A stretch of DNA of 63,750 nucleotides, filler included, from Olpidium bornovanus S191 (lineage: Eukaryota; Fungi; Olpidiomycota): the NCBI GenBank assembly GCA_017911155.1. It is 26 parts of 26 records of this genome, joined end to end, with 100 filler letters (N's around TTAATTAATTAA, not from the genome) between each part and the next. Parts side by side here need not be neighbours in the genome. Positions count along the whole stretch, not along the records: positions 15,136 to 17,455 come from JAEFCI010000334.1; 25 more parts are not named here. One strand, given 5' to 3'. This document shows, one piece after another, positions 17,129 through 17,326 of this stretch (the stretch's first letter is position 1; each line of letters starts with the position of its first letter). Below the pieces are notes generated by a model. That model saw only the letters and a list, made by a program, of their open reading frames with translations. It did no database searches and had not been told where the DNA came from. Made by a program: the position numbers and the translations under genes.

Positions 17129-17326
17129 TCATCCTGTAATCAGCTCGGGGAGCGCCTGGCTCCCTCCTGGCGACCGGTGGACGTGAACCGCCTGCCATCT
17201 GCTTCCGTCCTTGCGCACCCACACGCGGCTCTCCGGCGCGCTCGACACTTTTATCGGTTTGGAATCCTGCACTCCCCGGTAGACCTGCGTTAGGCGCACG
17301 TAGGTGACCAGCGCGCAGGAGCGGTC
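17129..17326 (-). CDS. Terminal exon encoding the C-terminal half of a CaMKII association (hub) domain
   Basis: After a CTGAC branch site and TTTTTCAG acceptor: DRSCALVTYVRLTQVYRGVQDSKPIKVSSAPESRVWVRKDGSRWQAVHVHRSPGGSQALPELITG*. This matches the CaMKII hub pattern ACIAYIRxTQ...EETRVWHRRDGKWQxVHFHRS. It is not in the ORF track; upstream exons are lost in the gap. Confidence 0.88.
   Translation of the reverse strand, partial: DRSCALVTYVRLTQVYRGVQDSKPIKVSSAPESRVWVRKDGSRWQAVHVHRSPGGSQALPELITG

Follow-up and report, generated by a model that had tools for sequence, protein, structure and literature searches.

A spliced, expressed exon of a CaMKII-type hub domain in an Olpidium bornovanus assembly, probably from a protein without a CaMKII-type kinase

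The ring formed by the hub (association) domain of CaMKII turns a plain kinase into a cooperative Ca2+ decoder that exchanges subunits; where this ring came from, and when the kinase joined it, are open evolutionary questions. Full-length CaMKII has been described only in metazoans and choanoflagellates (McSpadden et al., bioRxiv 10.1101/536094). Hubs lacking the kinase are present in the green algae Chlamydomonas, Volvox and Gonium and in Planctomycetes, for example Pirellula and Planctopirus, where they are approximately 50% identical to the human domain and assemble into 14- to 20-mers (10.1101/536094). The iota-carbonic anhydrases (LCIP63, COG4875/COG4337) belong to the same NTF2-like superfamily; some members of that group hit the CaMKII_AD profile, and an (H)HHSS motif marks each of their CaMKII-AD-like repeats (PMC6776030). 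To this set the exon described here adds the hub of a further eukaryote, rather divergent in sequence, expressed and spliced.

The window is a stretch of 63,750 nucleotides made up of 26 parts of the Olpidium bornovanus S191 assembly, joined end to end. The piece analysed, which was read on both strands, covers positions 15136-17455 of the window (JAEFCI010000334.1). Its minus strand carries a terminal coding exon at 17129..17326, comprising 65 codons (17326..17132) and a TGA stop (17131-17129), defined by translation, by Pfam and PDB matches and by two sets of RNA contigs (X1 and X2). The exon starts in phase 0 at 17326 with GAC, encoding D, and translates into the peptide ..ALVTYVRLTQ..PESRVWVRKDGSRWQAVHVHRS that the initial annotation had quoted; the complete frame reads DRSCALVTYVRLTQ...ESRVWVRKDGSRWQAVHVHRS and then runs on into a 13-residue tail. 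Three strands are present in the translation (..CALVTYVRLTQ.., ..ESRVWVRKDG.. and ..RWQAVHVHRS..), which, taken with the Pfam match, corresponds to about the C-terminal third of a CaMKII-type hub domain.

Upstream of the exon on the same strand lie the 3' splice acceptor of the last intron (cag, 17327..17329), at which the genome match of the X1 and X2 contigs stops, and the 3' part of that intron (17330..17424), in which a T5 tract adjoins the acceptor and CTGAC at 17360-17356, some 30 nt from the acceptor, resembles a branch site. At 17425..17455 the piece ends in 31 consecutive C (G in the coding sense), which may be an assembly or sequencing artefact; with the break at this run, the piece contains neither the beginning of the last intron nor any exon before it. 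Downstream of the stop codon, the 3' UTR (16881..17128, minus strand) extends to the contig ends at 16881 (X1) and 16894 (X2), just before a G24+G16 run at 16803-16843.

To Pfam profiles the exon matches a single family, CaMKII_AD (PF08332), with E = 2.2e-8 and 34.7 bits (curated gathering score, 22.1 bits) over profile positions 80-126, that is, over just 47 of the 128 positions. Neither SnoaL, DUF4440 nor any other family of the NTF2 clan matches the exon at E<=10 in Pfam, and NCBIfam holds no match at the same threshold. A sequence search of the PDB returned 20 matches, 19 of them CaMKII-type hub chains. The top match, 6of9 ("CaMKII hub"), has E = 5.3e-7, 32.7 bits and ~60% identity over 45-50 residues; it is followed by the human CaMKII delta, beta and alpha hubs and then by those of C. 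elegans, Nematostella and Salpingoeca, and the top matches are all ring-forming hubs that share 45-60% identity with the exon over ~50 residues. We take 6OF9 to be the Chlamydomonas 18-mer of McSpadden et al. The conserved C-terminal strands, Y-I/V-R-L-T-Q, E-T/S-R-V-W and V-H-x-H-R-S, align with those of solved hubs (6of9, 2w2c, 8uso) and also across eight relatives, and the PDB alignments conserve the Arg of YVR-LTQ, the Arg of ES-R-VW and both His of VHVHRS. At the level of sequence these matches confirm the exon as the end of a CaMKII-type association (hub) domain, predicted to belong to an NTF2-like alpha+beta cone.

The RNA check comprised the transcript-contig sets X1 and X2, from public runs, and two large raw RNA runs, X18 and X12. 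Contigs of the first two sets cover the genome from 16881 (X1) or 16894 (X2) to 17329 or 17327, respectively, and then diverge from it at the predicted acceptor; their 3' ends agree within 13 nt, and from 17335 upward, within the intron, word depth is zero in both sets. The X2 contig is 700 nt long, with 266 nt upstream of the junction and 434 nt beyond it. Its last 30 upstream nucleotides encode, in frame, LSPHVRFLHP directly before DRSCALV; this is the preceding strand of the hub (NPHVHLIGDE in animals) and is identical at nine of ten residues to the hub on a metagenome contig, L002. The departure of the RNA contigs from the genome at the acceptor, together with the in-frame LSPHVRFLHP, independently confirms both the splice site and the domain. 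The gene is real: it contains an intron, it is expressed, and its last exon is joined by splicing to a preceding exon in which the hub continues. Since the intron is spliceosomal and the transcripts are spliced, a bacterial contaminant and a dead gene are excluded.

A second upstream sequence is joined to the same acceptor in a 312-nt X1 contig (record 2), which reads in the sense direction ..TCCGCTTCCAGTCCCCAAACGAGCCAAACG|CAG|GAC and in frame ..SASSPQTSQTQ|DRS... This upstream part is Ser/Thr/Gln/Pro-rich and linker-like, its word depth is 10.9 versus 5.3 in the 3' part, and it could be an alternative exon or isoform, a paralogue or a mis-assembly. The X1 contigs break at 17192-17216. The window contains neither of the two upstream-exon 30-mers read from the X1 and X2 contigs. 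The raw runs X18 and X12 gave 0 reads at ~6% sampling, a depth too thin to count as a test. At 17107, in the 3' UTR, both RNA contig sets have A and the assembly has G, which points either to variation between strains or alleles or to an error in the assembly.

Two claims of the initial annotation are upheld by these data. It had read the exon as a hub and not as a generic SnoaL/DUF4440 protein, and had proposed a profile search as the means of refuting that; the search favoured the hub, with one Pfam family, a blank NCBIfam result and hub chains in the PDB. It had further described a spliced nuclear gene that is cut off on its 5' side by the homopolymer closing the contig, and the break of the RNA contigs at the acceptor bears this out, with expression.

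Among described systems, the kinase-less hubs of green algae and Planctomycetes include the likest solved match to the exon (6of9) and share its C-terminal motifs and its ~50% identity to animal hubs, and their size would probably be similar if the 700-nt transcript is complete. The exon is nevertheless at most 57% identical to any of the ~130-aa kinase-less hubs found, has no near relative among them, and departs from them in a loop between RLTQ and ESRVW that is 4-5 residues longer, in an extra residue in KDGS-RW and in the 13-residue tail. With the animal and choanoflagellate CaMKII hub (2W2C, 1HKX, 5IG3, 5IG0) it shares the Pfam family (E = 2e-6 to 1e-5 to human delta, beta and alpha), the motifs YxR-LTQ, E-x-RVW and H-x-H-RS, and the C-terminal position, but it has V at the site where animal hubs have H (RVW-H-RRDG).

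When the fragment is lengthened by the ten extra residues, it is 43-57% identical to bacterial hubs, to hubs on protist or other eukaryotic contigs and to animal hubs alike; for a few of the ~130-aa hubs in this comparison the source gives a name, which is Pirellulaceae, Pirellulales or Planctomycetes bacteria. A profile search yielded 5,234 hub proteins of 112-357 aa, most of them of ~130 aa. The non-animal eukaryotic relatives that could be reconstructed (L001, L002, L003 and P0007) are all without a protein kinase. L002 and L003 come from environmental or SRA contigs. The L003 gene (203-661; G+C 0.50) is a stand-alone hub with one intron whose Met directly follows a stop codon, and a polyubiquitin gene ends just upstream of it. 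P0007 is a transcriptome ORF of 155 aa that its source labels complete. L002 (175-623; G+C 0.39) has a four-codon first exon (MET-A) and a putative 38-nt GTATGT..TAG intron, and from this gene model it appears to be a stand-alone hub as well.

A different arrangement is found in L001 (1-1229, the JGI metagenome contig of P0009), where a UMP-CMP kinase is joined in frame to a C-terminal hub. The kinase is of eukaryotic type, with the P-loop GGPGAGKGTQ, an ADK score of 149.9 bits and, as best PDB matches, the UMP-CMP kinase/uridylate kinase chains 7e9v, 1tev, 1qf9 and 1uky. The join is a GTAAGT..TAG intron (..AESTMP|VLEHYAKDGKV..), and a second intron, GTGCGT..ACAG, lies inside the hub. The window exon and L001 have CALVTYVR, HVHRS and the additional residue in DG(K/S)xW in common, and their G+C is similar (0.59 for L001, against 0.63-0.66); the two are only 49% identical, however, which is no higher than the identity of the exon to bacterial hubs. 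No taxonomic hint came from a language-model atlas for P0007 or for the L001 kinase.

Dihydrofolate reductase (DHFR) is the second enzyme found in front of a hub. The DHFR-hub fusions are 293-298 aa long, residues 3-160 being DHFR and residues 175-297 a complete hub, and number about a dozen among the best 120 of the 5,234 proteins (P0040, P0024, P0018, P0032, P0044, P0055, P0060, P0082, P0083, P0103 and P0128). Their contigs reach 290 kb and they are therefore probably bacterial; three of them cluster together in the quick tree. This architecture suggests a ring-displayed DHFR, and in L001 and the DHFR fusions alike the hub is C-terminal, behind the enzyme. Two further proteins, P0011 and P0014, are from the NCBI eukaryote assembly GCA_041443025.1 and adjoin Sec63-domain genes.

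As judged from these gene models and protein sequences, the hub is a common kinase-less module to which other enzymes can apparently be attached N-terminally, the order of domains also seen in CaMKII. Together with the contigs L001, L002 and L003, the window exon shows that several eukaryotes with introns have CaMKII-type hubs, and that the enzyme in front of such a hub need not be a protein kinase. A limited library of literature was searched for hubs in fungi and for DHFR- or UMP-CMP-kinase-hub fusions, and none was found there. Kinase-less hubs of this kind are nonetheless already known and widespread, and the window exon is a divergent addition to them.

All trees were computed from 59-60 alignment columns. 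The quick tree is a polytomy. The careful tree groups the animal hubs (100/99) without the window sequence and makes the window hub and L001 sisters (92/91); these two have the longest branches, and their pairing may be long-branch attraction. An AU test of a clade uniting the window hub with the animal hubs gave p = 0.74 and hence no rejection on 59-60 columns. With a careful tree that is weakly informative and this AU value, a holozoan affinity is neither supported nor excluded.

Two other claims of the initial annotation are weakened. It had stressed closeness to the animal CaMKII hub; the hub is of CaMKII type, but its 45-57% identity extends equally to bacterial, protist and animal hubs, and the animal clade of the careful tree excludes it while the AU test does not reject the grouping. 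It had also singled out the exon as the best candidate in the window for an undescribed system, which claims more than the sequence supports, kinase-less hubs being widespread, as the 5,234 proteins attest.

Several searches were directed at the full-length protein and gene. With phmmer the exon found 13 hits among 1.84 billion representatives of any length, several of them spurious and none above 54% identity, so that no annotated close kinase-hub protein is present in that set. A word-indexed protein search with the 74-aa frame gave no candidate of 41-129 aa, and the same kind of search with the C-terminus of P0009 gave P0009 itself only; no recorded protein matched the 56-aa ORF exactly, whether its first residue was taken as V or as M. 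In the JGI metagenome contigs a peptide-pattern scan produced 599 pattern matches, of which 0 were confirmed, and an exact 24-mer of the upstream exon had 0 matches in metagenome contigs.

Based on the length of the X2 contig and on the relatives, our best reading, with a probability of about 0.65, is that the gene contributes the expressed last exon of a hub protein without a CaMKII-type Ser/Thr kinase, either stand-alone or fused to an enzyme. It is these two lines that bear on the point, because the 5' exons lie outside the piece. The 700 nt of the X2 contig are about the size of a stand-alone hub mRNA, consisting of ~30 nt of 5' UTR, ~440 nt of coding sequence and 235 nt of 3' UTR, which would place ~80 N-terminal hub codons upstream of the exon. 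On the other hand, the position of a contig end is arbitrary at a word depth of ~5, alternative splicing of the linker in genuine CaMKII genes would break an assembly at the same point, and the Ser/Thr/Gln-rich sequence upstream of the junction in X1 is linker-like. A fusion to a kinase is also more plausible a priori in an opisthokont host than in algae.

For the form of such a kinase-less protein, we tentatively favor, at somewhat short of even odds, a stand-alone hub of ~140-150 aa, by analogy with those of green algae and Planctomycetes and with L002, L003 and P0007. A hub fused behind another enzyme, analogous to the UMP-CMP-kinase-hub of L001 or to the DHFR-hub proteins, seems unlikely, though it merits consideration; an actual orthologue of the L001 fusion, as one case of a so far undescribed habit of mounting metabolic enzymes such as NMP kinase and DHFR on CaMKII-type rings, is a doubtful proposition of nearly the same order.

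By homology with solved hubs, the domain would form a wedge-shaped "vertical" dimer, and vertical dimers would pack laterally into a closed ring of 12-20 subunits, as in animal CaMKII hubs, the Chlamydomonas 18-mer and the Pirellula 14-mer. Such a ring would display its N-terminal cargo many times over, and the conserved Arg and His residues may act in the cavity and at the equatorial interface, to judge from the descriptions of homologues (10.1101/536094). Lacking a kinase, the assembly would be a multimerising scaffold and not a Ca2+ frequency decoder. A kinase-less hub in a chytrid-like fungal host would support a "ring first, kinase later" order; a kinase attached to it would move the origin of CaMKII deeper.

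The alternative that survives best is a true fungal CaMKII, i.e., a CaMKII-like subunit with a Ser/Thr kinase, a calmodulin-binding segment, a linker and a C-terminal hub, which we consider improbable. The exon does belong to a ring-forming CaMKII-type hub and has the C-terminal position seen in CaMKII, a clade with the animal hubs goes unrejected in the AU test, and the X1 upstream sequence is rich in Ser/Thr/Gln/Pro, like the variable linker, and gives two exons on one acceptor; a long protein would, moreover, have escaped those protein searches that were limited by length. Against this, no sequence of a kinase or regulatory segment is present in the piece or in the 30 nt readable per contig upstream of it, the full-length form is reported only from metazoans and choanoflagellates (10.1101/536094), and every reconstructable non-animal eukaryotic relative lacks a protein kinase. 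The animal clade of the careful tree leaves the window sequence out, none of the 1.84 billion representatives exceeds 54% identity, and the 700-nt X2 contig suits a small transcript. The combined proposition of a calmodulin-regulated Ser/Thr kinase in the missing 5' exons and a zoosporic fungus as host is about as improbable. If it were true, there would be a multimeric CaMKII outside Holozoa, and the kinase-hub fusion would date to the opisthokont ancestor.

We likewise give a low probability to an origin of the exon in another organism of the sample, in a mis-joined contig or in the remnant of a decaying gene. Either of the first two would make the exon uninformative about the genome under which it is filed, and would be compatible with every architecture discussed above. 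A mis-join is suggested by the hub segment itself, 581 bp at 16844-17424, which is bracketed by long G/C homopolymers, and by the start of the piece, which reads A68-G29-C25. The homopolymers (15146-15274, A68 then G29 and C25; 15378-15400, A23; and the runs at 16803-16843 and 17425-17455) have the appearance of artefacts of sequencing or assembly, or else of DNA of extremely low complexity, and contiguity across them is doubtful. Contamination would agree with the 0 reads at ~6% sampling in two large poly(A)/cDNA runs of the same species label, with a DNA run of that label that holds 15% of the left-half words and is absent among the holders of the hub stretch, and with soil metagenomes that hold 9-20% of the words. 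However, the RNA runs X1-X3, which belong to one study, hold both halves of the piece, and GC3 is equal in the hub exon and in the neighboring gene (0.78 and 0.79); these two observations argue that the piece comes from one organism. The spliceosomal intron and spliced transcripts exclude a bacterial contaminant and a relic.

Finally, it is very improbable that the exon is a generic NTF2-like protein (SnoaL/DUF4440/SgcJ) or an iota-carbonic-anhydrase repeat that happens to hit the CaMKII_AD profile: the limited coverage of that profile (47 of 128 positions), the weaker matches of full-length hubs to DUF4440 and SnoaL_3, the annotation of CaMKII-AD domains on iota-carbonic anhydrases (PMC6776030) and a language-model atlas that places the fragment among generic bacterial SnoaL-like/NTF2 fragments all leave room for it, but no rival family matches at E<=10 in Pfam or NCBIfam, the PDB matches are CaMKII-type hubs in 19 of 20 cases with no iota-carbonic anhydrase chain at E<=1, the ten residues recovered from RNA match hub strands, and the C-terminal motif HVHRS (..AVHVHRSPGG..) is that of CaMKII (HFHRS), with neither the (H)HHSS of iota-carbonic anhydrases nor any sign of repeats, so that the latter identity is rejected.

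The remainder of the piece and its occurrence in public data provided additional observations. The DNA data with the same species label are a 49-Mb contig set that holds 15% of the left half and does not appear in the list for the hub stretch; divergent strains may share this label, or a minor component of the sample may be the source of the piece. In soil metagenomes, 9-20% of the words sampled from the piece are present, and soil may thus be a habitat of the organism or of a near relative. The runs concerned in these comparisons are X4-X6, X25 and X26, with X18 and X12. Scans of the piece for tRNA and Rfam families returned nothing, and its other ORFs have no family match. On the plus strand, an ORF of 150 codons at 15577-16029 (G+C 0.70, GC3 0.79) matches neither Pfam nor NCBIfam; the small protein it encodes is hydrophobic in one segment close to the N-terminus (VVLTLALATILGTCFVLSLAVMSWVV) and also contains acidic runs and a PPAY motif, which is PPxY-like. 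AATAAA overlaps its stop codon (16025-16030) and recurs at 16078-16083. A Chlamydomonas-type green alga as the source was considered and is opposed by a weak argument only, namely that no TGTAA lies near the 3' end of the transcript and that AATAAA follows the neighboring gene. A GTGAGT at 15995 is a possible splice donor and would offer an alternative to this ORF. Of the words sampled from 15577-16790, 36-46% are present in the RNA runs X1-X3, and part of the left half is thus transcribed.
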